Positions 43,625 through 64,000 of a DNA stretch of 64,000 bases are shown here, piece after piece; positions within the stretch are counted from its first letter, which is position 1; every line of letters begins with the position of its first letter. A program made the translations under genes and the position numbers. The notes beneath the pieces are model-generated. The model had not been told where the DNA came from, did no database searches, and was given only the letters and a program-made list of their open reading frames with translations. Source of the stretch: Lepidodermella squamata (Eukaryota; Animalia; Gastrotricha); the NCBI GenBank assembly GCA_047495785.1, contig JBLDXI010000016.1, positions 434,001-498,000 of the forward strand. Direction: 5' to 3'.

Positions 43625-44023
43625 ATGAAGGCGGTTATCGGCATTGCTTTCCTGTTCTCTGTTGCGTTCGCAGCTCCGGTTGATAAGGTCGAAAAATCCG
43701 TGGTTACCCCACCAACTCCAGCGCCTACAGCACCGCTGGCCCCGGAGAACAAGCAGGTTGTCGTTGATAAGAAGAACGAAATCAAGCCCAAGTCATGGGT
43801 TGCCGGTTCGTGGCGCGCCTACATCCCCGACCCGCCAATCATCGTCCAGCCGCCCGTTGTCATTCAGGAGCCAATCTTCCCGATCATGCCCGACCTGCCT
43901 CTGTACCCTGAGCCGTTCTACCCGGCCTACCCAGCCTACCAGTACGAACAGGCCTATCTCGGCGCTCTCGTCAGGGCTCAACTCGGCTTCGGCTGGGCGA
44001 ATGGCTATGGACCGTGGTGGTAA
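43625..44023 (+). CDS. Secreted Pro/Tyr-rich small structural protein C (132 aa)
   Basis: Signal MKAVIGIAFLFSVAFA, KPK|SW, YPAYPAY, QAYLGALVRAQLG. TATAAA at 43469, 5'UTR intron 43556-43611, AATAAA at about 44124. Confidence 0.9.
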   Translation: MKAVIGIAFLFSVAFAAPVDKVEKSVVTPPTPAPTAPLAPENKQVVVDKKNEIKPKSWVAGSWRAYIPDPPIIVQPPVVIQEPIFPIMPDLPLYPEPFYPAYPAYQYEQAYLGALVRAQLGFGWANGYGPWW

Positions 44024-44569: not shown

Positions 44570-46552
44570 TTATTGAACTTCCAGTGTTTCTTGAAAGTAT
44601 GATCCAGATTTGGTCCAAATGTCGCCTGCAGCGAGCCTTCGCAACTCAAGTGGATAGATTCCAAGCTTGTTTGACCCATCAATGTTGTAGTATCGGCCAT
44701 GCAAGCCATCGATCACCGTCGCATTGGCCGCATCGGCAAATAACGTTGAAACCGAGGTTGTCTTCACATCAGAAATTGTTCGATTTTCTGAAAAAATTAA
44801 GAAAAAATTACAAATGAGCCTAAAATTTCATGGGAACGAGCATGGATGAAATCATATTCAGGAAGAATTGTTTTTCTTATATTTTTACCCATGTGAAGTA
44901 GATTTTGTCGTGATTGTTTACGTTTTTAAGAAGTTGAAAAATTCTAGAACTTCCATAACTAAAAAATGATCACCTTGCGCAAGTCGATTCGCTATATTTC
45001 CGAGAATTTTCCCTGTGTATAGCACCAGGTCGTAGCATCGTGTAGGCGGATTCATTTTGATGGCAGAATCGTCGTGCAAGTCAGCAATTTTCGCCTTCAT
45101 CACTTGATCAAACTCAGCCGCCGAAAGCTGCGTAGAATCCGCGTAATTAGGCGGCGATACAGTCAAAATTGGCACCTCCGAAATCGAAACGAGAGACGCA
45201 TTCAAAACTTGTCTCACGGCAGCAAAGGGACATAATCTTTCAGAATAATCTAAATCTTCCGCCAATTCAGCGTCTACGGCTAGAATTGTGACATTGGGCC
45301 CGAAAAGTCGATAGTGGAAAAGCCGACAAAATGCATTGTAGAGTGAAGGCATGTTCAGAATAATCAAATTAGGATTCTGCAGCTGCAAAGCTTCGCCGTA
45401 ATTGTCAGAATTTGTTTGGCCCAATATGTAATATCGCTGTGCTGTCAAGTTGCGATTCGAAAATTGTTCAATCAAGGAAGCTTCAAGCTGAAATTAAAAA
45501 AAAATGTCATCATTCGATTTTGGAAATGTCGAAATCGAACAACTTCAATTATGTGAATTAACAAATAATATTAAGATAAATGGATGATATTTACGTCTCT
45601 GTATGCAGCTACTGAAGAATCAGTGACAACAGCGATGTTAAGGTCTGTTTCTGTTACGTTTTGCGTCGATAACAATCTATCTACGAATTGGGCCATGGCC
45701 ATAACAGTGTAATCGTTTGCACGAGGCACCAGAGCGAACACATTATCCAAGCGATCATTTCCGCTATTTTCTGCAGCCGAAGCGTAGTAGCTGACCTAAA
45801 TTACAAGAGAATAAGTAGTTTGTTTTCGATCGAAATTAACGAGACTTGCCATGGTTATATTGTTAGTTGAAGCGATGACTGCAAGAGTGTTACGCGCTGC
45901 TGATTGCAAACAGTTGCCCAAGTTCAGATGAATAGGTAAGCGATTAAGGTGATCAGGCGGTGAACTCCATGTCTTCAACGTCTTCGAAATTGCCACGGAG
46001 TCTTGGCACTGAAACGCAAATAATGCCAATAACAATAAAAAAGGCACTGTATCTCCCGAAATGTGACTCTCCTAGTTCCGAGTTGCCTAATCACTCTCTT
46101 ATTATATTTCCTTAGGAGCATACCGAAATAATAGCATAATAGCATAGGTATGCTTCTAAGGAATGAAAAAATATTAAGATTCCGATAAGCCAGCCTAACT
46201 GACAACCTTCTTAATTTCTTCGTAATATTACCGAATCATCCAACAACTCCAGCCGCAGTTCATAGCCAGGCAGCCACATCGGGTCCATGTGCAATCGTTC
46301 GAGGGCGATTTCCATAGCTTTCGTGCACAGTGGACCGGCAGGTTTGCTTGTGAACCAAGGCCTGTAGGTTACAGCCGCTGTCATTGTCACAACTTTTCTC
46401 CTGTTGCTTGGCGGCTTTAAAACGTGCTGCTGCAGCGTATCGTCCATCGGGCTGTACGTTCTGACTGGCGTAGCACTCTGGTTGTAACTGTGAACGAATC
46501 CGAAGAAATACGGCAGACAACCGCTGGTTATTGCAATCAATAAAATATTCAT
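44570..46552 (-). CDS. Soluble GABA-B/class C-like Venus-flytrap protein, copy 1 (~470 aa, no TM domain)
   Basis: Exons 46552-46232, 46008-45850 (GC donor), 45795-45595, 45487-44974, 44787-44570 splice in frame. Motifs EIALERL...LPGYELRLELLD..C, NPNLIIL...FC.L...LFGP, QLSAAEF, CYDLVL. Hydrophobic N-terminus; stop after LEVQ. Confidence 0.8.
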
Positions 46553-48399
46553 TTTATACTGCAATTTTCCTGTCCACTGAATGAAACAGAACAAATACAT
46601 TTTAGTTTCTAAAGCTGGACGAAGCGTGACTTGTTGGGGCATTGCATTTAACCTAGGTACTAGGTATATATTCTGGTTACAATAGCGATGAATGCGGGTC
46701 AAAGTAATAAAACTAAGCCAACTGAGCAATTTGTGTAGTGTTAAATTCGATATCATCAGAGAATTTGACATCAACGATTTGATGAAATTGTTACAAAATG
46801 AAAAATGAAGCGAGAATTCAGCAATTTTCATATATTTTCCCGTCGCCGGTATATAACGAAATTAAACAATGCTAATAGCAGGAGACTACATAAACAATGC
46901 TGAATTCTTGCTCTATTTTAGTGCCCAAGTATTTCACCTAATTTTTTCTGACTTGGCTATGTAACATGTAATGCAGGCGGCACACGTAGCATAATATAGC
47001 ATGATAGCATGGTGATATACGATACGCCAAAAGACAGCTACAAGTGGCAGCAATTTAGGCAGCACACACAGGTAAGCGCGAATGACAGGTATTATTGCAT
47101 TATAATGCATGTCAGACATGATAGGGGACATATTTTAAAATACGCAATGTCTATTCCTACCTAATTTCTGAAATCAATAACGTGATATGGTCCCACTTGC
47201 GTAATGCCCAATTGCACTTGCATTTAATTGAAAAATTAGGTCAACAAATAGCGCAAGTGGGACATTCCAATATATTCTCAATTTGCATCCGATCAGTATA
47301 ATTCGTTGCACGCATTCGCGCGACTATAATGTCTATCATCCCCCAAAAAACCATGTATAGCCCCCTACGGAGTCGCAAAGCTGCATAATCTAATTTCAGT
47401 TCCGGGAGGTTTACTTGAAAACTTTGGGTGAATTTCGAAATTCAGCTATTATGGCTCTCACTTCGATGCGTCTACCTGTAAAGTTTCATAATGCTATCGT
47501 CAAATTTCGAATTTCCACGCTATGCTGAAACATCGCGTACATACTATGTACGAATTGCAAATTTCGCTATTAGTTATCTACGAATAACTTGACCCTTGAA
47601 AAAAAACAAATTTATTTGGATGATGGCGATTAAGAAGACCGAAAGCCCGAAAGCCTTAGGTTTTTACATGGAAAAATCTTTCATCCGCTGCTTGAGCCTG
47701 AGCTTCTCGTAATTACGGGGAGAATTCTTAAAAGAAAACACCCTGAGCGAGTGTAGCAGAATTACCCACACCGGCACGAAATAAGCTGAAATGTGCTGGC
47801 ATTGATTTGAGCCGCTGAAATACGCCGAAATAAGGCATGGTGGGCTGTTAATCACTGAAATAACATTCAAGACCCACGAGACCCACGTAAACCACTATTG
47901 AGCCACGACTCGGTCACTTGCAGCGCTGGAACTTTGATCACCATGAGCGCAGCTGCCACCTCGAGCTCCCAGAGCCTCGACTTGCAGCGCTAAAGATATC
48001 AGACGATTGGCTGAATAAATGGATCAACGCGACTTTCACGGAGGGAAGGACGATTTCGGAATTTCGACTTTGAATTCGGAGAAAATTGAATTTGATGAAT
48101 TCTTGATCGCCCTTTTGAGGTATATTGCTTTTCAATGTTGGCTACGATGATTTGGGACCAGGACACCGTTATATTGCATAAATTGTTTCGAGTTGGAAAT
48201 TAAAAAAAGAAGATGCTACTGAAATTCAATCAAATTTGATAGATAAAGAGAAACGGGTTTTAAAAAACGTGTTCACGGCCTTTCAAAACCCCTAAAACTG
48301 CTGTCAAATATTTTTTCCACCGTGGATAACTAATTCCGCCAGCATAAAAAGGGTTAAAGTTATGATGATTCGGCATTATGTTAAACTGGGAAAATGGAG

Positions 48400-48640
48400 T
48401 AAAAATCAATTAGACAACGGCTATTTAAAACTTGGTGAGTCTTAAAACTGTTAAGAAAACAATTGTTAATATATTCATCATTGAACTGCCAACACTCCTT
48501 GGCAGTAGAATCCGTTTGCATGTTCCGTTTGCAGCGAGCCTCCACAACTCTAAATTCCAAGCTTGTTTGACCCATAGATGTTGTAGTATCGGCCATGCAG
48601 GCCGTCAATCATCGTCACATTCGACGTATCAGATAATATT
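48400..48640 (-). pseudogene. Orphan last exon and 3'UTR of a further VFT copy
   Basis: GLHGRYYNIYGSNKLGI*SCG...GVLAVQ* homologous to exon 5, disrupted and truncated at about 48640 by unrelated sequence. Confidence 0.85.
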
Positions 48641-49717
48641 AACAGATTGTTTAAACAACCCAACCCTGGATTAAAGAGTAACTGCGAAATAGACATTGCG
48701 TAGAAATTTAAGAAAGCTCTCTTGGGGGTGGGGGCATCATTATTTATGAACAGGAGGTTGAACGGCCGCGGTGAGGCATGGAGAATGCGATTGGCAAGTA
48801 GATTCCGATTCAGGGTTCAGCAGATAGCTGACTCCGGTAAAATTTGCAACCGCTCGAAGTTAACTTTTAAATCACAACGAAATTGCGGCAATAAATGTTG
48901 CGAAGGCCATATTGGTGGGTTTATTGCGACATCTGTATGATAAAAGACAGATTCTCAGAGCTAACTAAAGCTGCTAACAGAAACCAAGCGTAAAAGCTGG
49001 TTGGAGTTTGTCTTGATGATCTCAGCGAAATTACTTTCTGAAGTATTCGATGGTTATTTGCCCCCCTGTGTGTGGTTTCTTTTGCGCGTTGTTGCTTGCC
49101 TGAATAGTAGATAAGGAGTAAGAAACGATCTTTGAAATAGGTATGCTGAATTCACCTCTTCAGCCGGTTGGGCTGCGTTGTCGTGGTTGAGTGTGAATGG
49201 TTATGTTTGCGACTACCCTCTTGCCTGAATATAGATTGATAAAAAGATCTTAGCAAAATGCTGAAGTTACCTCTCCACCAGATCAGCTTGAACGTTGTCG
49301 CTGTAGTAGTATGAACATGAAAAATTATGAGATCTGGTCGAATAAATGAACTGTATACTCACGCCTCATTGTTACCAGCCTCGTGTTCATCATAGCTAGC
49401 ATCCGTCATGACGACGTAGACGCTGAGAGCGACAAAACCCAGCAGAACAGCGGTAATGAAGCGCATTTTACTGATAAGTCAAATTCAGAGTAAATTTCAA
49501 CCAACTGTACTTCTAACTCGTTATTGAGCCCCATTTTTATAGCCTCCGAGTCGTGCTCGAGTGGCATAATGCAATAATTAACTTGATTGGGCACATATAA
49601 AAATAATAAACAGAAAAATCGTTTGCTTTGTCCTTTTCCAGGCAACAACAACAACGACACACTTTTGCGGTTTACATGAGGTTTAGCTAATAATAAAAAA
49701 ACGAATTGGCTAATTCT

Positions 49718-49910
49718 ACCACATTATCGTTATAGCGAGAGCGTTTTTGTCATAACGAACCTGGATAGTGCCAAGCAAAAAGTTCGTTACGGACAAAGTT
49801 CGCTATAGCAAGAGTGAATTACATGGGACAAGCCACGGGAAAAGCTAAATCCAGGTTCGTTATAACCGGGAAGTACGTTCTAAGGAAAGTTTACGTCCGG
49901 GAAGTTTACG
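49718..49910. repeat. Partial Tigger/pogo-like MITE arm
   Basis: Repeated TTCGTTATA / TTCGCTATA / CGTTATAACCG subterminal motifs; no matching second arm was found. Confidence 0.4.
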
Positions 49911-49924
49911 ACCTCAGAGGGTAT

Positions 49925-49979
49925 AGAATTCCACGCCGCACGCACACGTCGCTAGAATTCCACGCCGCACGCACACGTC
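49925..49979 (+). repeat. Two-copy 27-bp direct repeat
   Basis: TAGAATTCCACGCCGCACGCACACGTC occurs twice, separated by GC. Confidence 0.85.
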
Positions 49980-50597
49980 TTATCACTCTCACTGTCAATT
50001 GCGATCCTCTTCATCTTGAATTGATGCGTCTTTTGTGGCTTATATTGCTCCTTCTTTCGCCGTGATTTTGCACGTTTTCGTCATGACAAGTTCTAAGTTC
50101 TGATTTTCAACCAGGAAAGACCAGGAAAGAACCCTTTCGAAGAGAATACTCAGCACCTTTAAACCTTTTATCCAAGTGAAATGGAAAATTACTTCACATT
50201 TTATTTAGCCATTAAATCACCAGTTTCTAGTATTGAAAAATATTTCCCTTGACGGCTAAATTTATAAGACGATTGACTGAATAATTGGATCAACGTGACG
50301 TAAAGTGATGCTTCGGAACTCTGTTAGATTGGGAAAATAGAATGGGAAACGTGACAAATTAAAATTTGTCCTTCTTGCGACCAAACCGGCTCATTTCCCG
50401 TCTACTGTCCTCATTTACCCAGCCATCCTCGATTACCAAAATTCAGCCTTGAAGATCTATTTCTGCTGGCTGCTCTTTTGTACCATTTTATCTTGAGACG
50501 CAATTTCTGAGAAAATCAATTAGACGGCTATTAAAAACTTGGCGAGTCTTAAAATTGTTTAAATAATTTTCCACCAAGAGTTCTCCAGCTGACATAA

Positions 50598-52714
50598 TTA
50601 TTGAACTGCCAGTACTCCTTGGAAGTAGGATCCAACTTTGCTCCAAGTTCCATCGGCAACGAGCCTCCGCAACTCTAGCGGATAGATTCCAAGCTTGTTT
50701 GACCCATCGATGTTGTAGTATCGGCCATGCAAGCCATCGATCATAGTCATATTTGACGCATCGGAAAATAACTTCGAAACGGAGGCTGTCTTCAGATCCG
50801 AAATTGTTCGATTCTCTGAAAAATATATGAAAGGTTGTCAGCTGAAAAATATCGGTTCTAATCTTGTGAGACAGCATTTAATGAAAATCAGAAATAATCA
50901 AAATCGAGCGTTCCAAAACCATAATAATAACACTAATTGATATTCCAGAGAAAACGTAAGATCCTCAAAAAACCCAGTCCACAATTGAACTTAACAGACC
51001 TTTCAATTTTTTAATTATATAATATTTCCTTTAAATTCCCATTTTTTTCCTCATTTTCACCTGAAATACATTTTCTCTGAAGAATCAAAGATTTTAATAT
51101 TTTATCCTTATTTGTATAATATTTGAAAAATTTGAAAATGAACATTTGTTTACGTTGGCTTAGTCGATTCGCTAAATTTCCGAGAATTTTCCCAGTGTAT
51201 AGCACCAGGTCGTAGCATCTTGAAGACGGATAACTTTTGATGGGAGAATCGTTGCCCAGGTCAGAAATTTTCGCGCGCATGACTTCATCAAACTCATCCG
51301 CCGATAGCTGGGTGGCATCTACGTAATTAGGCGGCAATAAAGTCGCAATTGGCACCTCCGAAATAGAAACGACCGAAGCAGCCATAACTTGTCTGACGGC
51401 CCCATATGGACATTTTCGTTCGTAATAATAACTCGAATACCCAAGAGCGTCTTCCGATTCGGCATCTGTGACTAGAATTGTGACATTTGGCCCGAAAAGA
51501 CCGTAGCGGTAAATATGGCAAAACACATTGTAGTAGTAGAATGAGGGCACGTCAAGGATAATCAAATTAGGATTCTGCCGGTGCAAAGCCTCGCCGTAAT
51601 CGCCATTATCGTAATTGCCTGGAATGTAATGTCGCCGGGCTGTTATATTGCGATTCGATAATTGTCCAATCAGGGAAGCTTCAAACTGAAATTAAAAAAT
51701 TCGTAGTTGGAAATGTAACTAAAATTAAAAACTATTTTTTTAATTAATCATATTTACCTCACTGGATGTTGTGCTGTCAGTGACAAAAGCGATATTGGCG
51801 GCATTTTTTGATGCGTTTTGCATTGATAGCAATTTTCCTACGAATTGCGTCATGGCATCAGAAATTGAATCGGACGTAAAAGGGACCATAGCGACAACAT
51901 TTTCCAATCGATCACGTCCGGCCATAGCGTAGTAGCTGACCTAAATTCACGGCGTGTGAGTAATCAATTTTCAGCTGAAGTTAAAGAGACTTACCATGGT
52001 TATATTGTAGGTTGAGGCGACAACTGCAGGAGTGTTACGCAGTGTTGATCGGAAACAGTTGCCCAGGTTCAGATGAATTGGCAAGCGGTTAGGGTAATCA
52101 GGCGATGAACTCCACGTCTTGAAAGTTCTCGCCATCGCCAATGCAGCGTCGCACTGAAACGAAGAAATGTAACAAAAATTAATTATAAACAAGGGCTTAA
52201 TCTCCAGAAAGTTCCCGATGTGTTTTTATACCTTCTAGGATATATGAGGGTATTCGAGTAATGATTTCAATGTTAATTCAGTATGCTATTACCAGACATA
52301 AACAAAATTAAAATAAAAAAACGGGGATTCTAAAAAAGTGCTAACTGACAAACTTCTTAATTTCTCGATTTCTTGGTTTATTTGTAATATTACCTTATCA
52401 TCTAACACCTCGAGTCGCAGCTCATAACCAGGCAGCCAATTCGGGTCCATATGCAATCGCTCGAGTGCGATTTCCATAGCTTTCGTGCACAGCGGACCGG
52501 AAGGTTTGCTCGTGTACCAATGTATGTAGCTTACAGCCGCCGTCATTGTCACAATTTTGCTCCTGTTGCTTGGCGCCTTGAAAATGTGCTGCTGCAACGT
52601 ATCTTCCACCGGGCTGTACTTTGTTACTGGCGTAGAACTCTGTTCGTAGCTGTGAACGAATCCGAAGAAATATGGCAAACAACCCCTGGTTATTGCAATC
52701 AACAAAATGTTCAT
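50598..52714 (-). CDS. Soluble Venus-flytrap protein, copy 2 (intact)
   Basis: Same five-exon structure (52714-52394, 52153-51995, 51940-about 51758, about 51686-51154, about 50815-50598), ending FQGVLAVQ*. Confidence 0.8.
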
Positions 52715-53984
52715 TTTATACTAAAGTTGTTCTACATTATTTCGAAAAAAAATATAAATATTACTATGAATTTCAAGCACTGCGTGACCTAGAACCTAGA
52801 GACCGATATTATTTTATTCGAACCTGCGAGATTAAAGAAAAAACTGATAGAGCGATTGATGCCGACATTGCCGAGAATTCATTTCAAAATTACTGATTTT
52901 CGCTCATTTCCAAGGATTTTATTTTACCTTATTTTTATCTGAATTTGTAGGATCTCCGGATCTGGGGAAGCTCTCGTGGGGAGAGATTTTCGATATTAAG
53001 TACACTTCGTGTTCCGAGCGAATTAATTTTACAATAACAAAGGCATGTCCTGAAACTGAATCTTAAAAATATTGTCTTCTTTGTAATAGAATGCATAGGA
53101 GCTTCTGCATCCTTGAAAAACACGCGAGTTGTTTGACTGGATTATTTTTATTTTTAATACGAATCAAGTGATAGAAGAGTGACTAAAATTGACCTTGCGT
53201 ATGCAAATCGAGACAAACACGTCTTATTAATGATGCGGTTTTCCGAACAAAAACAGCGTAAAGATGACAGACAAGAAGTGAAGCGTGATTTTCCGAAGGT
53301 GAACGAGCGTAAATTCCGAAAATTGACATGAAGTTTGAAAAAGTTTAATTCGAGAAAAATCTAATTATTTCTGGAAGTTTTTTAATAATAATTTTTCTAG
53401 TTCGAGATTCGGAATACACCGCGCGACCGTCAAGTTAAAAAGCTAGAAATCCGCCAACAGGGCTTAAATTTTGTTGCTAACGACGCCGTTTATCAGGTCG
53501 TTCATTCGCCTCAAGATTAACTGAAAGTGGCGGTACGGCCCACTAGTTCCCCGAGGCTAAAATTACCAATGATATACGTTTTGGATTTGACAGCCATATC
53601 CAGAGTATTTGCCCTTCAGCTCGCTTTTCGTGATATCCAGCTAACATGCATTTTTCACCTACCGAATGGCAGCTGAAACAATTTACGTGACGCCTGTGGG
53701 GGAGGAAGACGTAATTCGAAATATACTTTGGTAGGATGTTGGAAGCGAGTAAATAATGTTATAGCACATTAATGACCACCGCGTTGAAATTCTACTGCGA
53801 TGAGCGTTGGCATCATATGATCGCATCATGTGACCGTTGGGCGCAACTATATCGTTCCAGCTGCCTTGACGTGGCGGTTGGGTGCAGTCGACTCCGCTTC
53901 ACATGATACACACTAAGCCCAGTCATTCAGCTCTCTTTCATTTTCAAAGTAATTAATTAATTTACAAATTTTCAGTCAAACAGA

Positions 53985-54340
53985 ATGTTCTTCCAAGCTT
54001 CACTGATCTTCGCAATGTTCATCGCTCTTGCTTCATCTGCTGGTGTGTTTTTCTGTTTTAATTTGAAGTTCGGCAATTTCAATTTATAATTATCTTTACT
54101 CATATAGTGTTCAAAAGCACGGACAAGAACTGTGAGAAGGGAGCGTTGATTGTCGCGAAATACACGGGTGTCAACTTTTTGAAATGCATGGAACGTTGTG
54201 GGGCCAACATCAGATGCCCGGTTCTTTCGCACAACTCTAAGAATGGTGACGAGTGCATTTTTTACGACAGATGCACAGGGCCGTCTCTGGGAGCACAGGC
54301 CCAAATGAGTAATGATAAGAAGTTCTTCCTGAAGCAGTGA
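53985..54340 (+). CDS. Small secreted single PAN/apple-like domain protein (~96 aa)
   Basis: Signal MFFQASLIFAMFIALASSA (exon 53985-54042), intron 54043-54107, six Cys with a C-x3-C-x5-C core (CMERCGANIRC...ECIFYDRC), AATAAA at about 54414. Confidence 0.75.
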
Positions 54341-54701
54341 AGCTCACATTGAAGCAACGCTGCTCTTGACATTGACGGAGGAGAGATTTGTTGGATGCCC
54401 GTCAAATAATATAAATAAAATGACACAGAATCTACGGCTAAAGTAAATACACTATTCCGTTTAGCATGGGAACGCTTTTTCAGCGGTTGAAGTAAGAGGG
54501 GTAATGTCATGAAAAGACTTGTGCTTCGGCAACAACTTGCTTTATTACTTGAAAATAACCAGAATGAATGAAATCATACAACCAAGATCTTTAAAAGGAC
54601 CGAACGATGACGTATCAACGACAACGTAATAATCACGGCATAATCACAGTACAATAAACATAACAATGTTTCCAAGTTCCTTACACCATACCCCTCCTTC
54701 T

Positions 54702-57700
54702 TCAAGGAGCGCGAGACCTGGAGCAAAAAATTCGGCTTGGTGCAGGCTTTCTCGGATATTTGCGGTGAAACTCGGCTACCAGATCGGGCGAATTCGTGAC
54801 GTTTCCAGCCGGTTCCCATGTACAATCTTCAGGCCCGTAGCCAACCCATTCAACAAGGTACTTGAGGCGACCATGATCGTAAAGAAGAACGCCATTCGCC
54901 TCACCCAGCCGCTTGCGATCGATGTTGATAGAAGCTGGTTGGCCGGCCAACAAGGACCGTGCAGCCTTCGAGAAATCGTCGACTTGTGCTTCGCGAATTC
55001 TATCGTGCAGTGGGCTTTGTAAATGAACAAACGAACGCGTCGCCATGATTCGCAAATTCTTCGATTGTAGAATGAATTGAGGCTCGGCGTTGACCACACC
55101 TGGAGACTGATGCTGTGATTTTCGGGATAAAGCGTCGGCCTTGCCACATTTTGAACCGGGGCGATAAGTGATAACAAAATCGAAACGGGCGAAAAACTCG
55201 GCCCATCGGGCTTGGCGTTGATTCAGAATTTTGACCTTGCTTTCGAAGAATTCGAGATTTCGGTGGTCGGTAAAAACAGTGACTTGGTGACGAGCGCCTT
55301 CCAGGTAATGCCGCCATTGCTCGAACGCGACTTTGATTGCCAGGAGTTCCTTGTCGAAAATGCCGTATTTTTGTTCAGCCTCAGTGAGGCTCCTCGAGTA
55401 GAAGGCGCAAGGGTGAAGATAACCGTCAGCTGCCACTTGTGACAAAATGCAGCCCACGGCAAAGTTTGAAGCATCTGTTTCGACAATGAACGGTTTCTTC
55501 GGGTCAGCATGAATCAGAACCGGTGCCGAAGTGAAACGCGATTTCAATTCCATGAAGGCTTCTTCAGCTTGACGGCTCCAGACAAAGACCGAGTTTTTGC
55601 GCATCAACCGAGTCAGCGGTTTCGCTATCGAGGCAAAATCTCTAATAAATCGACGATAAAAGTTAGCAAAACCTAAAAAAGTTTGAACTTCCCTGAGGTT
55701 GGTCGGGCTTTTCCAGTTTCGAACAGCTTCGACCTTCGCTGGCGACATGGTGATCCCATCCGTGCCGACAAGAAATCCAAGAAATTCCACTTTCTCAACT
55801 TCGAACTCGCATTTTGTGAGCTTGGCGAACAATTTGTTTTCTCGAAGCCGTTGTAGCACCATTTTGACGTGAATTTCATGTTCGGCCAGTGAATTCGAGA
55901 AGATCAAAATGTCATCTAAATAGACGATGACAAAAATATCGATCATATCGCGAAAGATGTCGTTCATGAAATGTTGAAATGCCGCCGGGGCCCCGGACAA
56001 TCCAAAGGGCATGACCAAATATTCGAACAAGCCGTAGCACGAACGAAAGGCCGTCTTCCATTCGTCGCCTTCGCGGATTCGCAATAGGTTATAGGCATTT
56101 TTTAAGTCCAGACGGGTGAACACCTTCGCCTTGCCGATGCGGTCGAGCAATTGCGGGATCAACGGCAGCGGATATCGTACCTTCTTACTTACTCGATTTA
56201 GACCGCGATAATCGATGACTGGGCGTAAAGTGCCATCTTTCTTTTTAACAAACATAATTGGGGAAGAAGCCGATGACTTAGACGGACGGATGAAGCCCTT
56301 GGCCAAATTTTCTTTCAGGTATTTGCGTAGTACTTCGAGCTCGGTTTCAGAAAGACTGTAAATCGGTCCAAACGGCGGACTTTTCCCTGCTTCGATATCG
56401 ATAGAACAGTCGTACGGTCGGTGCGGTGGCAACTTGTCTGCTTCGTGCTCGTCAAAAACATCGGCGAATGAGCTGTATTTTTCTGGCAGAACCGTAACTT
56501 CCTGACGAACTTGAGCGGTGAGAACACGGCCAGCGGCTGAATTGCTCTGATCGTCACATTGACAATGCACAGCGCAGTAATTCGAATTGTAGTGAATCGT
56601 GCTCGCCTGCCAGTCGATTTGCGGATTGTGAAGTTTTAACCATGGTAGACCAAGTACAACGGCGTAATGCGGGCTTTGAATAATATCAAATTTAATCAGC
56701 TCCTTGTGACCAGCGACTTCGAAGAGCAGCGGTACCGTCTCGAGAGCAGCAATACCAGTGCTGAGGGCTCGGCCGTCGATGCCTTCGATTCTCACTGGAC
56801 GAGCTTTCGGAACCAGAGGGATGCCGCGTTGACGGGCGAATTTCGCGTCCATAAAATTGCCATCGGCACCACAGTCGACCATCGCCAGCGCGAATGAACC
56901 TCGATCAGTGAAGGGTTCGACCACCATCCCTTGAATGACAAAAAGATTAACTGAATAACAATCATCTGCATCATCTTTATTAGAAAAATGGCTCGAAAAG
57001 TTTCTCGAATTAATATTATTAAAATTTCTTGCGCTTTTCTGCCGCCCAGGGGCGTTGGGGCAATTGTAACAAAGGTGTCCAGCGGCGCCGCAATAAAAAC
57101 AAAGTCCGAGACGACGACGGCGGTCTCGTTCTGCTTGCTGATTTGCTGCTTGGCCGTTCGGCTGCTTGGCTGCTTGGCCGCTTGGCTGCTTGGCGACAAC
57201 ACGGCCAATTTCCATCGGTTCGGGTTGCTGGCTGACCGGCTCATGAGCAGGTTCAACAGAGCTCGAACAACTTGACGTTGCCGCATAGTAACCGCGCGAC
57301 AGGTTACGGCCAGATTCGCGCTGCTTTTCCAGTTTTCTTTCGGACAGGCGGATGTCGATGCGATTTGCTTGGTCAATCATTTTCTTCAGATTTATAGAAG
57401 GTTCGCAGAGCGCAAGCACATCCTTAATTTCATCATTAAGGCCAAGACGAAAATGATGGCACATGGCTGCGTCATTGAAATCGAGGTCGTTGCAAATTTG
57501 ATTGAATTCTGCTGCGTATGCGGCCACAGAACGTTTTCCCTGGTTCAGCTTTTCGAGCTTATAAAGCGCAGTTGCTTTACGATCAGGGTCATCGAATATT
57601 GCTGCGAATCTCGTTTTGAAAGAAGTCAAAAAGTTCAAATCGGCATCCTTCTTCTCTATCAACGAAGTGGCCCAATCTCGTGCTGTGCCACGTAGTAATG

Positions 57701-57947
57701 ACAAAATCAGGCCGACTTGTAGTTTCTCGGTTGAGTACAGCGTCGGATTGAGTTCGATGTATAATGAGCACTGCGCCCAGAACGCCGCGAACTCAGCGCG
57801 ATTTCCGTCAAAATTGCCGGGTAGTTCGCCGCGGCGAGGCTCAAATCGACTTCGGGGTGACAAAGAGCTTTCCAGTGTTTCAAACTTGGCTGACATTGCC
57901 GCCAATTGATTTGCCAGTAGGTTGATCTGTTCTTCAGTTGAAGCCAT
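54702..57947 (-). CDS. Single-frame Gag-Pol: capsid, CCHC knuckle, aspartic protease, RT, RNase H, partial chromodomain (no integrase)
   Basis: [59 protein letters not shown], then GVLLYD joined directly to [22 protein letters not shown]. Confidence 0.95.
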
Positions 57948-58018
57948 GATGTCGCAAAAATTCGAAGACAAGAGGCAAAATGCAAGTGTTGAGGAAGCTT
58001 CAGTGAAAAATAATTGTG

Positions 58019-58031
58019 ATTCTGGTTATTT
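58019..58031 (-). promoter_or_regulatory. Self-priming primer-binding site
   Basis: The minus-strand sequence right after the 5' LTR, AAATAACCAGAAT, is complementary to ATTCTGGTTATTT within the LTR (plus 58080-58092). There is no TGG tRNA-type PBS. Confidence 0.85.
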
Positions 58032-59053
58032 TGTCATGAAAAGACTTGTGCTTCGGCAACAACTTGCTTTATTACTTGAAAATAACCAGAATGAATGAAA
58101 TCATACAACCAAGATCTTTAAAAGGACCGAACGATGACGTATCAACGACAACGTAATAATCACGGCATAATCACAGTACAATAAACATAACAATGTTTCC
58201 AAGTTCCTTACAGGTAACGAGGAGTTGGGGCCCCTGGTTTGCCTTTTTTGTTGGAAGATTGATGCTTAGAAGAAAGCAGTTCGAATTCAAGATCGAATGC
58301 GTTTCTCATCAGCATTAATTTGAACTCGGAAAGATGCATCTTGGTGATTACGGGTGAGTAAATGCTCGTGCCTTACTTTTCATTCATGGAGAATCGACAA
58401 TTTTGAACCGGAGAAAATTGTAAGCGAATATTCATTATTTCATAAACATTTTTGCTGATGTTCAGTCTCGGTTGATCTTTATCATTTTTTTGTGAAAGCC
58501 GCCCGAGATTCGGCGATGCTCGCCTTTGCAGCCGTGCGATCTGATTTGATGAGCGATGGTTCGACTCCTCAGCAAGGAGCATGTTTGTTACGAATTTTTA
58601 CTGTCACCTACGACGAAGATGGTCGAGCGAAAAATTGTCATACGAACCTCAAACCTCTTGATTGGTTCGAGGTAATTCAATTTACAGGGGTCAATATTTC
58701 CTCTTTGCCTCTTCATTAACCTTAAAAACCCGCTATTTACTTATATCAACCGTGAAAATGAAACTGATGTAAACAAGCCTAAATCCGAGTTATATAACGA
58801 CGCGAACGATATACTCAACATTAAATATAGCCATTCAGTTTTCCAGTATGGCAAAATATTGCCTTTGGCAGCTAAATAAATCGCAGGCTATTGACTGCAT
58901 CAACGCGACGTAAAATAATGTTTCATAATCATGTTGGATTGGGAAAATGGAGTAAAAATCAATTAGACAACGGCTATTAAAAATTTTGTGCAATTGTGTC
59001 TTAAAATTGTTACAATAATTGTCCACCAACAGTATTCCAGTTAGGTAATATAA

Positions 59054-61657
59054 TTATTGAGTTCCCAGTACGCCTTGAAAGTAGAATCCAACTTCTTTCC
59101 AGATTCCGTCGGCACCGAGCCTCCGCAACTCTAGCGGATGAATTCCAAGCTTGTCCGACCCATCGATGTTGTAGTATCGGCCATGCAAGCCATCAATCAT
59201 TGTCACATTGGACGCATCGGAAAATAACTTTGAAACGGAGGCTGTCTTTAGATCCGAAATTGTTCGATTCTCTGAAAAATAATAGTTGCAAAAAATGTTC
59301 AGCTCCCTAATATCATAGCTCCAATTTAGAAACAGAGGTCGGATGTCGGATTAAAGAGAAATTAAAGTCGCTGAAATAAATCCCACTCTACTATTAACTT
59401 CTAGAACCAAAATAATTACATACAATTACCTCTACAATCTTATAGTAACCTCTGAATCTCTAACCGTAACACCGCTGAAGCTTCAAAAATTGATGTTCGT
59501 GTTCTCCGATCATTACTGAGAGATCATTACTGGCCAGAGTTCGACAACATGGCGTGGTAGGTAAACTTAACCCGCCCTTAAAAGTGTGAATATTTACCTT
59601 TGCTTAGCCTATTCGCTATATTTCCGAGAATTTTCCCCGTGTATAACACCAGGTCGTAGCATCTTGAGGATGGATAAGCTTTGATGGGAGAGTCGTCGCC
59701 CAAATCTGCAATTTTCGCGTTCATCACTTCATCAAACTCAGCCGCCGAAAGCTGCGTAGCATCCACGTAATAACGCGGCAGAACAGTCGAAACTGGCACC
59801 TCCGAAATAGAAACGACCGACGCAGCCATAACTTGTCTCACGGCCGCAAGGGGACATGTTCTTTCGGAATAACTCGAATATTCGTCCGCCAATTCAGCTT
59901 CAGTGGTTAGAATCGTGACATTTGGCCCGAAAAGTCCGTAGCGGAAAAGTTGACAAAACACATTGTAGAGTGAAGCAACGTTAACGATAATCAAATTAGG
60001 ATTCTGCAGTCGCAAAGCCTCGCCATAATCGCCATAATAATCGTTATCGCCTAAAATGTAATATCGCCGCGCAGTTATATTGCGAGTCGAAAATTGTCCA
60101 ATCAGGGAAGCTTCAACCTGAAAAAATAAAAAAGGTATACAATTTGACAATTTGACAATTTTAAGTTTACAATAATAAGTAAAAGTGATTGAATTAAAAT
60201 TCAAAATGTGTTTTATAGTGAATAATATTTACCTCTCTGTATGCATCTATCGTGAAATCAGTGATGACAGCTATATTAACCGGTTTTTTCGATACGAATT
60301 GCAACGATATCAATCTTTCTACGAATTGCGTCATGACATCAACAGTCAAGTCGAACGACGGCACTAAGGCGTGTACATTTCTGCGTCCACTTTTGGCTGT
60401 CGAAGAGTAGTAGCTGACCTAAATTCAAGGTAAAAGTAATGAATTCTCTTTAGAAATTATCTCAAAAATCAAGGAGGCTTACCAGGGTTATATTGAAAGT
60501 TGAAGCGATAACTGCCATCGTACTTGGGGGTGCCATGTCAGGACAGTCGCCCAAGTCTAGATGAAAAGGCAATCGATTGGGGTGATCAGACGATGAACTC
60601 CAGGTTTCGAACATTTTCGAAATCGCCGTTGCAGCATCGCACTGAAATGTAAAAATCAAATTCGAAATTTAAATTCATATAAATTCCAAAATTCGCCACG
60701 ACATTCTCCTGGCTTTTATTACTTTGCTCCCTACTGTAGCTGCTGGGTACCGGGGAAATCTTGCTTGGAAGGTTCCAGTAGCCAAAAGCCGAAAATATTC
60801 CCTACTTTGATTGCGGAAAATATTCCGCATGTGAAACCAAGTAGCTAAATCCTATTTCCCCTTGGTGGGGAAAGCGATTCAAGTGGATGAAAGAAAATAT
60901 TTTGAATTCATCTGGTTCAGCTTTGAAATCCCTTTGGTATCATGTTTTCCCTTCGATTCCTGCCAGTTCGAAGATGGGAACAGACCCATAAGTTATCCGC
61001 AACTTTATAACCAAGCGATGACCGATTCTGACTTAATGTATAGTATTTGCATCTTGATACTCGGGTGCAATCAAATACCCGCCGTCACAGGTCGAAGGCA
61101 AGGTTGAGTAAGTTAAAGAAAGAGATCCCGAAACTGCTCCCGCATGGCCAACGCTCCGCAAATGGCTAATCCCGGGTCGCCATTCAGAACGATTTCGGCC
61201 ACCCTTGCAACGGAAAAGATGCCGAATTCCGAACCAGTAGCTTGTTAATCGACAGAACAAACATTTTCCGTTTTGGCCGGTTTGAGGGAGGGGAGTATAG
61301 CGGGGCCTGAACGTCGCACATTGCATTGGACAATGAGAACTTAGTTGTCCCTATGAACAAATTTCTCATGAACCAATGAACCTATGAACTAACAATAAGC
61401 CAGTAGCACAAATGAGAGAATGAGAGTTGAATGCTTGTCTAGTGTTGCGGGCAGCGGGCACTTATTCTGCGCTCGGCTTACCTCATCATCTAACACCTCG
61501 AGTCGCAGTTCATAACCAGGCAGCCACTTCGGGTCCATATGCAATCGCTCGAGGGCGATTTCCATAGCTTTTGTGCACAGCAAACCGATAGGTTTGTCTG
61601 TGTACCAAGGACTGTAGTTTACAGCGGCCGTCATCGTCACAATTTTGCTCCTGTTGC
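59054..61657 (-). pseudogene. Venus-flytrap copy 3, 5'-truncated (signal peptide lost), remaining exons in frame
   Basis: Homology to exon 1 ends at about 61657. Exons 2-5 are open, ending FQGVLGTQ*. Intron 1 is enlarged by an insertion. Confidence 0.75.
60730..61380 (-). mobile_element. Degenerate TE relic in copy 3 intron 1 (possible Ulp1-like protease fragment)
   Basis: Minus frame QATGSEFGIFSVARVAEIVLNGDPG...AMREQF resembles the QxxGxDCGxF...GxDP...MRxHL pattern of TE-borne C48 proteases; contains stops; absent from the other copies. Confidence 0.3.
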
Positions 61658-62890
61658 CTGAGACACTGCTGGTTCATAGCATGATGACAGTTATGAGAGT
61701 CGTTCTACCTTAATTACCGATCTTCACTTTAAACGAACTAGTGATTTCTTTAGAGAACAGGGATTCAGTTCTGATTTTCAACCGGGATTCGTACCTCGAA
61801 AGATGATTTTACCTTTAGGAAGAGAATACTCAGTACCTTCCAATCATAACAAATCAAAAAGCCCAAATAAAGTACGAAATATAATTTTACTTGCCTAATT
61901 TTATTGAAACAGAAACCCATTCCGTGTTTCTCAAAGTGAAATAGAAAACATATATGCTCAATATTATACATAGCCATTCAGTTTTCCAGTATGGCAAAAT
62001 ATTGTCTTTGGCAGCTAAATATATCAGATTATTGACTGAAAAAATGGATCATCGCGACGTTTGCGCCAAGTTGCACAAAGCGTGAACAATTGCGTCTAAG
62101 ACCTATTAAAGCAGCAGGAATGGGGGTCAAAGCAATAAACCACTTCTAAACCGATCGAGAGATTCACGTGATGTTATATTAGATGAGAAGAGCGCTGTAT
62201 AATTCCTTTTTTTGTAAACAATGAGATAATTCGTAAAAAAACGTGGGAATTATAATCCCAGGTATTTCACCATATTTATCTGAATTTTTAGGATCCCCGG
62301 CTTTGAATAAGCTCTCGCGCGGCAGGGTTCTAGAGTTTCAGTACATTTTCGTGTAACGGGCTAATTAATTGTACATTAGCTGGCATGTCAGGCAATGGAA
62401 TCTTGGAAATACCCTTCTCCCTTCTCTTTGATAGCAAGTTTAGGTCTTCTATGTAGCCTAGATAAAGCGAGTTGTTTGACTTGGGTTTTTAATGCGAACG
62501 AAGCCATAAACGTAGGAATAATAATAAGGCGAGAAATTTAATGCTCACCCTTCTATTGCGCCAATTTTGGCGACGTTTCGACACATTCATGTGCTATCAT
62601 TTATTCCAGGCAAAACAAAGAAATAGGCTACAACATATATTGAGTGTAGAAAAAAGTACAACAAAGAGGATCAAATAGATAGCTTAGCTTTGATAGAGTC
62701 CTTTTGATTAATGAGGTTAGGCTTGACTGATTAAATGAAGAGAACAAGGAATCATGAATTTTTCAAACAGGAGACACCGGCTACTAGAAATCTTGGTATG
62801 TATTTAGTCCTCAGTCTTCAATTTTGGCCGTGTAGACCATAACAACTCGTTATAACAATTGGTCAACAACAGCTATTTCTGTTGATACAT

Positions 62891-63868
62891 TTATTGAACT
62901 CCCAGCACTCCTTGAAAATAAGATCCAACTTTGGTCCAAATTCCGTCCTCACCGAGCCTCCGCAACTCTATTGGATAAATTCCAAGCTTGTTTGACCCAT
63001 CGATGTTGTAGTATCGGCCATGCAAGCCATCGATCATCGTCACATTCGACGCATCCGAGAATAATTTTGAAACTGAGGCTGTCTTAAGATCCGAAATTGT
63101 TCGATTCTCTGTAAAAATATTTGTTCCAAATTTGATATGTTTTCAGCTCTAATTTCGTGAGACAGCATTCTCAGTGCTTCAGTGCTGGAAACCAAAACTT
63201 GAATCACATAAACTGCATTTTCCGAAATTTTTTTTATATTTCGAATTTTGTCACTATTTTAAGATCGGAGCAATTTTGTCTGATCTCATTGACGTATTGT
63301 TACTCAGTTTTTTCATTTATTTCTTGAACATATATGAGTTGAAAATATTACCTTGGCTTAGTCGATTCGCTATATTTCCTAGAATTTTCCCAGTGTATAG
63401 CACCAGATCGTAGCATCTTGAAGATGGATGCGTTTTGACCGGAGAATCGTTGCCCAAATCAGCAATTTTCGCGTTCATAACTTGATCAAACTCATCCGCC
63501 GAAAGCTGCGAACCATTCACGTAATCACGCGGCGAAAAAGTTGAAATAGGCGCCTCCGTAATAGAAACGACCGAATCATTCATGACTTGTCTCACGGCCC
63601 CATATGGACATTTTCTTTCATAATGATAACTCGAATGCCCAAGAGCGTCTTCCGATTCGGCACCTGTGACTAGAATTGTAACATTTGGCCCGTAAAGTCC
63701 GTAACGAAAAAGTTGACAAAATGCATCGTAGAGCGAAGCAACGTTAACAATAATCAAATTGGGATTCTGCAGTCGCAAAGCCTCGCCGTAGTTATAATCG
63801 CCAGAAATGTAATGTCGCCGCGCAGTTATATTGCGATTCGAAAATCGTCCAATTAAGGAAGCTTCAAA
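62891..63868 (-). CDS. Venus-flytrap copy 4, exons 4-5 (continues beyond the window)
   Basis: Exon 63868-about 63352 and exon about 63108-62891, ending FQGVLGVQ*. Confidence 0.8.
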
Positions 63869-64000
63869 CTAAAGTTAATATTTTAAAATTAAAACAAATC
63901 GTGGTTGGAAATTTTGAAATAAAAAAATCAAGAATTTTACAGTTTCGAAGTGCCTATTTGTACATAATTTTCAAAAGTGACCTACTTGTTATTTCACGAA

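Follow-up and report, generated by a model that had tools for sequence, protein, structure and literature searches.

Organisation of the flytrap array

The window analysed here, a 64,000-nucleotide stretch of a contig from the small-intron animal Lepidodermella squamata, carries on its minus strand an array made up of four five-exon copies (A, B, C and D) and one exon-5 relic. With copy E, which lies beyond the window, the family totals six members: A, B and D are intact, and C, E and the relic are decaying. Only A and B are at once complete, intact and wholly inside the window. In the exon models, the intact frames measure 470 codons in copy A, 470 in copy B and 468 in copy D. Exon 1 of copy A (46232-46552, GT donor) contains the ATG, a hydrophobic leader (MNILLIAITSGCLPYFFGFVHS followed by Y; Kyte-Doolittle maximum of 1.76 at residues 3-21) and the start of flytrap lobe 1. 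It is followed by exon 2 (45850-46008, GC donor), exon 3 (45595-45795), exon 4 (44974-45487), which is the largest exon, corresponds to the middle of the flytrap and matches the family HMM (E = 8e-18), and exon 5 (44570-44787), which ends in LEVQ and a TAA at 44570-44572. Copy B has the same layout: an exon 1 with ATG and leader (52394-52714), exons 2 (51995-52153), 3 (51758-51940) and 4 (51154-51685; family HMM E = 5e-21) and an exon 5 (50598-50815) ending in LAVQ and a TAA at 50598-50600. Copy D straddles the window end, with exons 4 (63352-63868; family HMM E = 7e-18) and 5 (62891-63108, ending in LGVQ and TAA) inside and exons 1-3 in the adjoining 1.7 kb (L001:1282-1605, 533-691 and 292-480). 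D and C are only 1.15 kb apart. A Ty3/gypsy element is located between copies B and C.

The decaying members have degenerated in different ways. In copy C, the start codon and signal peptide are gone: part of its exon 1 is deleted, and the remnant (61482-61673) is open only from SGNRSKIVTMTAAV, with two stops upstream of the remaining open part. Its other exons were located at 60483-60641 (exon 2), 60233-60418 (exon 3), 59598-60117 (exon 4; family HMM E = 1e-22) and 59054-59271 (exon 5, ending in LGTQ and TAA). Copy E (L001:3981-7619) is broken twice, by about 1.45 kb of sequence inserted into exon 3 and by a frameshift of 8 bp in exon 5. The relic (48402-48638) comprises only the 3' part of exon 5 and the 3' UTR; it shares 75% identity with copy B, has an in-frame stop as well as an internal deletion, and closes with LAVQ and a stop. 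The sequence-only reading had described four copies and a fragment sharing a five-exon structure, which is correct for the four copies and has to be abandoned for the fragment, a degenerate exon-5 relic. Its view of an expanding family is half right, as three of the six members are intact and the other three are decaying.

The gene structure is maintained across copies. All five-exon copies use AG acceptors and GT donors, except for a GC donor at intron 2 of A, D and E; the splice sites are kept and the intron phases (0, 0, 0 and 0/1) are common to the copies. The reported common stop, with its peptide endings, is borne out by an identical CAA-TAA in every copy. A GT beside this stop is indeed absent from copy C, as had been noticed, and the other copies have AGTTCAATAA there; comparison of the stop regions reveals no splice donor before the stop that is conserved across copies. 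The 3' sequences that follow had been called related, which holds within groups only (B with C and the relic; A with E).

The intact frames bear the mark of selection. Pairwise dN/dS ranges from 0.35 to 0.49 at dS of 0.36-0.46, and is thus below 0.5 in every pair and not near the value of 1 that, coupled with a lack of expression, had been named beforehand as speaking against the reading. A dN/dS near 0.4 is fairly relaxed, yet it is purifying selection. The most conserved parts are exons 1 (dN/dS = 0.44) and 5 (0.29), which belong to lobe 1, and the most variable are the putative pocket-forming loops in exons 2 and 3. In simulations, a neutral frame remained open in 5e-5 of the trials at 0.18 substitutions per site. 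Regarding expression, in a contig from a public run (X1), exon 5 directly follows an exon 4 whose end is exactly that of copy A, and 23 of the 27 variants of X1 match copy A, including bases of exon 5 that are unique to this copy. Intron 4 of copy A is therefore spliced as predicted. X1 also covers exons and not the introns of copy B, with some depth past the stop of that copy. This run is small, was kept as contigs, which cannot show RNA ends, and is the only RNA-like one, its RNA label being a guess.

Kinship with GABA-B-type receptors

The copies contain the motifs MEIALERL..WLPGYELRLE.LDD. followed by C, FC..(F/Y)RYGL(F/Y)GPN and CYDLVL(Y/F)TG, so the GABA-B/class C motif set quoted in the sequence-only reading is present. 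Against a profile of 15 paralogous receptors, exon 4 of the copies reaches E-values from 1e-18 to 1e-23, and a profile built from exon 4 aligns to the paralogue profile with a probability of 99% (hhalign, E = 8.5e-18); exons 2, 3 and 5 give collinear matches to the same profile, each of them weak. The paralogue profile matches in turn the solved GABA-B1/B2 structures (E = 2e-28 to 6e-24), and reaches 1e-7 or worse with those of mGluR, T1R and CaSR. The reading frames of the paralogues pass Pfam ANF_receptor with 30-43 bits (gathering threshold 25.4 bits), and one of them has a weak Peripla_BP_6 match. All searches used the exons singly and not the joined spliced protein: under these conditions, the best array match to ANF_receptor (PF01094) is that of exon 1, with 15 bits (E = 0.013) for the threshold of 25.4 bits. 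Exons 1-4, also taken singly, gave noise against PDB profiles, except for a marginal GABA-B1 match of exon 1 (E = 0.92), and the noise from exons 2 and 3 allowed no reliable mapping of the GABA-contact residues. The predicted fold of exon 4 is weak (pLDDT 61); its top Foldseek matches are GABA-B chains, all with E ≥ 0.035. An exhaustive HMMER scan of exon 4 against 1.84 billion representatives returned only four weak matches and no orthologue. The array thus carries a GABA-B-type flytrap domain by way of a bridge through the paralogues rather than through direct matches. That the array genes encode flytraps of GABA-B type behind an N-terminal hydrophobic leader is well supported.

In the phylogeny, the five copies group as one clade (support 100/100), and the stem leading to it measures 1.98 changes per site. 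The tree gives no specific sister relationship between the array and the neighbouring paralogues, as the node is an unresolved polytomy. Array and paralogues share intron positions at positions ~103-105 and ~281-283 of the family HMM. Since the introns are shared and the array is nested within the receptor family, it is secondarily derived from a eukaryotic receptor. The long stem points to a change of function that would have followed the loss of the membrane half.

The membrane half and the leader

The stop of the array members falls about 45 residues before the first membrane helix of their relatives, and precedes the ISWRTHDGNPPRD motif and TM1 of the closest paralogue. A 7TM domain after the flytrap, as in class C GPCRs, is lacking from the array genes; each intact copy is a gene of its own, with a complete flytrap frame that stops short of any membrane helix. 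Since Pfam 7tm_3 fails on the 7TM regions of the closest paralogues, a family profile was built for the 7TM search. In leave-one-out tests, this profile recovers 7TM pieces of 80 amino acids, and it gave no 7TM match with E < 2 in 94 kb around the array (C16:414001-508000). The earlier claim that no 7TM-coding exon lies between the copies is therefore upheld, and extends to the sequence beside the array. The relatives provide a further control: a 7TM exon is found ~50-100 bp downstream in 21/21 other intron-bearing genes (loci L019-L038) and also downstream in L005, L012 and L013, that is, in 24/24 of the other intron-bearing relatives sampled. Minus-strand reading frames in the intergenic parts of the array contain no kinase, cyclase or 7TM domain. 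Protocadherin-like constant exons were searched for downstream of copy A and none was found. The sequence SWRTLGG, which follows the stop of copy B out of frame, was considered as a possible remnant of the stalk motif (SWRTHDG in the paralogue) and set aside as statistically unsupported (E = 9.5). Lacking the stalk motif, the 7TM and a cytoplasmic tail, the array products cannot be G-protein-coupled receptors.

A membrane domain could still have been missed if exon 5 were alternatively spliced to a distant or very divergent 7TM, kinase or cyclase exon or to shared constant exons downstream of the array, as in protocadherin clusters. In the paralogues, the flytrap/7TM boundary coincides exactly with an intron, and the contigs of run X1 cannot show the 3' ends of transcripts. 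Nevertheless, this seems highly improbable: the 94 kb are devoid of 7TM signal for a profile that detected all of the controls, no conserved donor precedes a stop that all members have kept, the distance between D and C is short, and the intergenic reading frames are free of domains.

In the intact copies, the leader at residues 3-21 of exon 1, with V-H-S at positions -3 to -1, is the sole hydrophobic segment common to all, and hydropathy reveals no transmembrane or GPI-type segment in them. The C-terminal 15 residues are not hydrophobic; because their mean hydropathy is only -0.85 to 0.37, there is no GPI-type tail. Five N-glycosylation sequons are conserved among the intact copies. From this hydropathy and these sequons we infer secretion, and the array products are most likely secreted, soluble, glycosylated ligand-binding proteins.

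Possible functions and known counterparts

Class C receptors are modular. The array very probably consists of real, functional flytrap genes devoid of 7TM, and it seems fairly likely that they make up a lineage-specific tandem family of stand-alone genes whose products are released as ligand binders. All would go back to a single class C receptor gene of GABA-B type; its final flytrap exon would have gained a stop some 45-50 codons early, upstream of both the conserved W..DG..P.D stalk motif and the first membrane helix, and its 7TM exon would have been lost. The hydrophobic leader, with a predicted cleavage after VHS, would route the protein into the secretory pathway, where the five conserved sequons would be used, and a bilobed domain of ~50 kDa would be released from the cell, because it has neither a membrane helix nor a hydrophobic GPI-type tail. 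Outside the cell, the flytrap would shut on a small ligand in the manner of class C flytraps, and would thereby buffer, sequester or carry it. The pocket-forming loops of exons 2 and 3 vary more than any other part, which suggests that the copies may differ in ligand. By analogy with the acetylcholine-binding protein, a role as soluble carriers, decoys or chemosensory adjuncts is plausible. We put at about even the chance that the products act freely as soluble ligand binders and are neither subunits bound to a receptor nor proteins associated with membranes.

Several other explanations have to be weighed. Canonical GABA-B is an obligate heterodimer in which only one flytrap binds the ligand, and the array flytraps might likewise be receptor subunits, pairing, once secreted, via lobe 1 with membrane-bound GABA-B-like paralogues and tuning the neighbouring orphan receptors, either by supplying the ligand-binding half or by blocking dimerisation. 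The GABA-B type of the family, the presence of several full-length paralogues 17-55 kb from the array on the same contig, with neighbours at C16:515k, 536k, 540k and 549k, and the stronger conservation of the lobe-1 exons make this option worth considering, but it is rather unlikely, as the array is not specifically sister to those neighbours and its long stem suggests divergence away from the receptor family. A related and quite speculative possibility is that the secreted flytraps are diffusible ligand-capturing subunits which, once loaded, dock on the membrane-bound paralogues and switch them on or off. If true, they would be an animal counterpart of the pairing of bacterial periplasmic binding proteins with chemoreceptors. 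It is doubtful that the products stay at the cell surface or in membranes via a partner or a lipid and act there as surface ligand sensors. Neither the C-terminal hydropathy, which does not form a GPI-type tail, nor the hydrophobic profile common to A, B and D, which lacks a second segment, agrees with such retention, even if it has parallels in two flytrap proteins: SmGBP from Schistosoma mansoni, which has no 7TM, is tightly associated with membranes and resists salt, alkali and urea extraction from them (PMC3206071), and EhVFT from Entamoeba histolytica is held by a GPI anchor (PMC12965686). Finally, the copies could be non-functional leftovers of a truncated receptor gene, passively duplicated and decaying. 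Three members are in fact eroded, C without a start, E disrupted and frameshifted and one copy reduced to its exon-5 relic, and dN/dS is not low. This already disfavoured explanation is nevertheless hard to believe: three frames of ~470 codons are open at dS of ~0.4 (for a simulated ~5e-5 per lineage), the splice sites are conserved, as is the position of the stop, every pair is below 0.5 in dN/dS and a spliced copy-A contig exists.

The preferred reading, a family of released flytraps, can be compared with several known systems. Molluscan acetylcholine-binding protein is a secreted copy of a receptor ligand-binding domain that could buffer the ligand; the concept is the same, but that protein has a Cys-loop fold and belongs to an unrelated family, so that the parallel is no more than an analogy. 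Bacterial periplasmic binding proteins (LIVBP type, Peripla_BP_6) are soluble bilobed flytrap binders too; they differ in that the array was not inherited as a soluble protein. With GABA-B-type class C GPCRs, the array shares a homologous flytrap, conserved cysteines and the YGL(F/Y)GPN and CYD motifs, and it differs from them by its lack of stalk motif, 7TM and cytoplasmic tail and by its very long stem. To our knowledge, animals rarely have free-standing flytrap genes, and essentially a single case has been studied. EhVFT resembles the array proteins in being a flytrap protein without a transmembrane domain; it is, however, protozoan, GPI-anchored and phylogenetically closer to periplasmic binding proteins (PMC12965686), whereas the array proteins have no GPI-type tail. 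GABA-B-type class C GPCRs have also been reported in sponges (bioRxiv 10.1101/120998). The genome of L. squamata holds hundreds of orphan GABA-B-like receptors, and the small, predicted-soluble array proteins should express easily, which would open a practical route to the ligands of this orphan receptor expansion; they could also help to find out whether soluble domains of receptors influence signalling outside the cell in a simple animal. The idea has more precedent than the sequence-only reading implied, since SmGBP, a truncated mGluR-like flytrap without 7TM, has already been characterised and shown to bind glutamate (PMC3206071). Like the array members, it is encoded by a stand-alone animal gene for a class C flytrap only, without the heptahelical part. 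Yet SmGBP is of mGluR type, single-gene and membrane-associated, whereas the array is of GABA-B type, tandemly multi-copy and predicted to be soluble, and it stands out by combining this type with a multi-copy family under selection and an export signal without an anchor.

Gene structure and transcription of the array

All array copies lie on the minus strand, and in a MAFFT alignment of the five gene regions, blocks of conserved sequence alternate with spacers that do not align. The blocks are edged by AG on the 5' side and GT on the 3' side, except for intron 2, whose donor is GC (ATG/GCAAG) in copies A (45848-45849), D (L001:531-532, L001 being the stretch just beyond the window end) and E (L001:6904-6905) and GT in B and C, a GC-AG/GT-AG polymorphism among the array paralogues. 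Exon models were obtained by reading each exon in the frame set by the preceding one, and the phases were verified arithmetically exon by exon. Copies A (exons 46552-46232, 46008-45850, 45795-45595, 45487-44974 and 44787-44570, minus strand) and B (52714-52394, 52153-51995, 51940-51758, 51685-51154 and 50815-50598, minus strand) are both open over 470 codons. Copy D is open over 468 codons, its exons 4 (63868-63352, minus strand) and 5 (63108-62891, minus strand) lying in the window and exons 3 to 1 in L001. Copy C has intact exons 2-5 and a deletion in exon 1 that removed the ATG and the leader, with two stops upstream of the residual open part. Copy E, entirely outside the window, carries an insert of ~1.45 kb in exon 3 and an 8-bp insertion in exon 5 that shifts the frame and does away with the stop. 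The sequence-only reading had described four copies and a fragment sharing five exons and a common end; this holds for the five-exon models of the copies and for the CAA-TAA end of A, B, C and D, but the fragment (48402-48638) is only a relic of the exon 5 end and 3' UTR, 75% identical, which also ends in LAVQ* but has a deletion and an in-frame stop.

Several other elements accompany the genes. Between copies B and C, a Ty3/gypsy-type element (54702-57971, minus strand) has one open frame of 1089 codons with gag, aspartyl protease, reverse transcriptase, RNase H and C-terminal chromodomain regions, and no integrase-core match was found in this frame. Intron 1 of copy D is extended from ~240 to ~590 bp by a G+C-rich insertion (L001:860-1081), hairpin- or MITE-like in appearance, whose 69-nt inverted repeat has arms that are 96% complementary and separated by 84 nt. 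An open frame on the opposite strand (43574-44023, plus strand), immediately downstream of copy A, belongs to a neighbouring cluster; its product is proline-rich and of low complexity, and its hydrophobic leader is internal.

Only two public sequencing runs contain the array stretch: X2, which is DNA-like (94% of words), and X1, from 2015 and guessed to be RNA (5%). Both were mapped on the copy B region (47001-52900). In the A-B spacer, the X2 depth at 47986-48182 is ~120 times the baseline (8586 vs ~70), indicating a high-copy repeat. X1 covers the exon bins and drops to zero in introns 1 and 4 of copy B. One X1 contig joins exon 4 directly to exon 5, the 338-bp intron being replaced by exactly eight letters that correspond to the copy A exon-4 end, and 23 of the 27 differences between X1 and copy B are copy A bases, including three unique to A. 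Thus, copy A gives rise to transcripts from which intron 4 has been spliced out where predicted; the only other reading of the signal is a retrocopy in the DNA of a relative. Single-base hints in X1 point to B-like and C-like transcripts as well. Some X1 depth occurs just beyond the copy B stop, X1 consisting of contigs, which cannot show RNA ends.

Relationship to GABA-B receptors

The genome (121 Mb, 151 contigs) is eukaryotic and has short introns; the window occupies C16:434001-498000. Its class C receptor family is very large: of 542 first-look candidates, more than 150 pass Pfam 7tm_3, and at least 82 places in the genome are similar to array exon 4, the majority inside open frames of 600-800 codons. 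Since single array exons lack the length and the similarity needed for direct assignment to a family, the genome's own paralogues were taken as a bridge. Exon 4 of all five copies matches a profile built from 15 paralogous frames that include flytrap and 7TM (E 1e-18 to 1e-23) and aligns with a second paralogue alignment over 169 columns (hhalign probability 99%, E 8.5e-18), on which exons 2, 3 and 5, individually weak matches, are collinear (columns 2-45, 60-87 and 286-340). The paralogues pass Pfam ANF_receptor, and their profile matches the solved GABA-B1 and GABA-B2 receptors over flytrap and 7TM (E 2e-28 to 6e-24), against 1e-7 or worse for mGluR, taste and calcium-sensing receptors. Folding exon 4 by itself gives a low-quality model (pLDDT 61), whose top Foldseek hits are GABA-B chains. 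As read through this bridge, the array proteins are GABA-B-like flytraps, in agreement with their initial assignment.

The missing membrane part

The closest paralogue, L005 (33% identity in exon 4), has a 114-codon exon homologous to exon 5, which continues via ISWRTHDGNPPRD until it enters the first membrane helix; its 7TM exon starts ~60 bp further on. The array exon 5, of 72 codons, ends ~45-50 residues earlier, right after the last flytrap strands. With the family profile, no 7TM match at E<2 was found on either strand of C16:414001-508000, which bears out the earlier statement that no 7TM exon is visible between the copies. The profile is sensitive enough for this purpose, since two controls succeeded: 80-residue 7TM pieces were recovered in leave-one-out searches (mostly E<1e-3, same database size), and among 20 further loci picked for short flytrap frames a 7TM exon was found directly downstream (E <= 1e-8) in each of the 21 genes with an examined downstream flank, as likewise in L005 and two other paralogous loci (L012, L013). 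Kinase, cyclase and 7TM domains are absent from the intergenic minus-strand reading frames of the array, only 1.15 kb separates the copy D stop from copy C, and no donor site before the stop is conserved among the copies.

Many family members (among L012, L013 and L019-L038, on other contigs) share three intron positions, at family-HMM ~103-105, ~281-283 and ~400-411, other members being intronless. As the last falls exactly on the flytrap/7TM boundary, this arrangement would ease the loss or exchange of 7TM exons. In the +1 frame after the copy B stop (50552-50597, minus strand), the 3' UTR reads ..VSWRTLGGKLF.., and that of copy C ..NWNTVGGQLL..; both recall the paralogue stalk motif I(S)WRT.DG..P.D, a likeness that is not significant (E 9.5), and the copy B stretch may represent what is left of the lost exon end.

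Selection, proposed function and known systems

Maximum-likelihood analysis of the exon-4 region, including 44 paralogues, places the five copies in one clade (support 100/100). Among the inner branches of the tree the stem of this clade is the longest, at 1.98 changes per site, and the tips within the clade are short, a pattern that fits a single truncation event followed by fast divergence and tandem duplication. Pairwise amino-acid identity is 68-78% and dS 0.36-0.46; dN/dS is 0.35-0.49, away from the value near 1 that, together with no expression, the sequence-only reading had named as counting against its proposal, and varies among exons from 0.29 (exon 5) to 0.68 (exon 3). Under simulated random mutation (0.18 substitutions per site), all five exon frames of copy B stay open in 5e-5 of trials; open frames have been kept in three lineages. 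Five N-glycosylation sequons are conserved across A, B and D. Decay of the array genes is unlikely, as the selection on the copies speaks against it.

The only hydrophobic stretch common to all intact copies is at exon 1 residues 3-21; their last 15 residues are not hydrophobic, making a GPI signal unlikely. The leader would direct the protein to the secretory pathway; it would be glycosylated there and, with nothing retaining it in the membrane, released. A secreted, glycosylated, free bilobed binder is the best-supported prediction. Besides decay, two functional alternatives remain, namely that the array proteins act as soluble partners for the membrane-bound paralogues, or that they associate with membranes via a partner, as for the truncated mGluR-like glutamate-binding protein SmGBP of Schistosoma mansoni, which was found associated with membranes (PMC3206071). 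The loops of exons 2 and 3, which in class C flytraps form the wall of the pocket, are the most variable parts of the array copies; this variability is a hint that ligands differ from copy to copy.

The array is real and moderately interesting. Like the array genes, SmGBP is an animal gene encoding a class C flytrap alone, but it is of mGluR type, glutamate-binding and membrane-associated (PMC3206071), whereas the array proteins are of GABA-B type and predicted to be freely secreted. A flytrap protein of Entamoeba also lacks a 7TM but is GPI-anchored (PMC12965686). Sponges have lineage-specific GABA-B expansions with altered pockets (10.1101/120998). The array is new in its GABA-B-type origin, its multi-copy tandem family, its predicted free secretion and its long stem branch.
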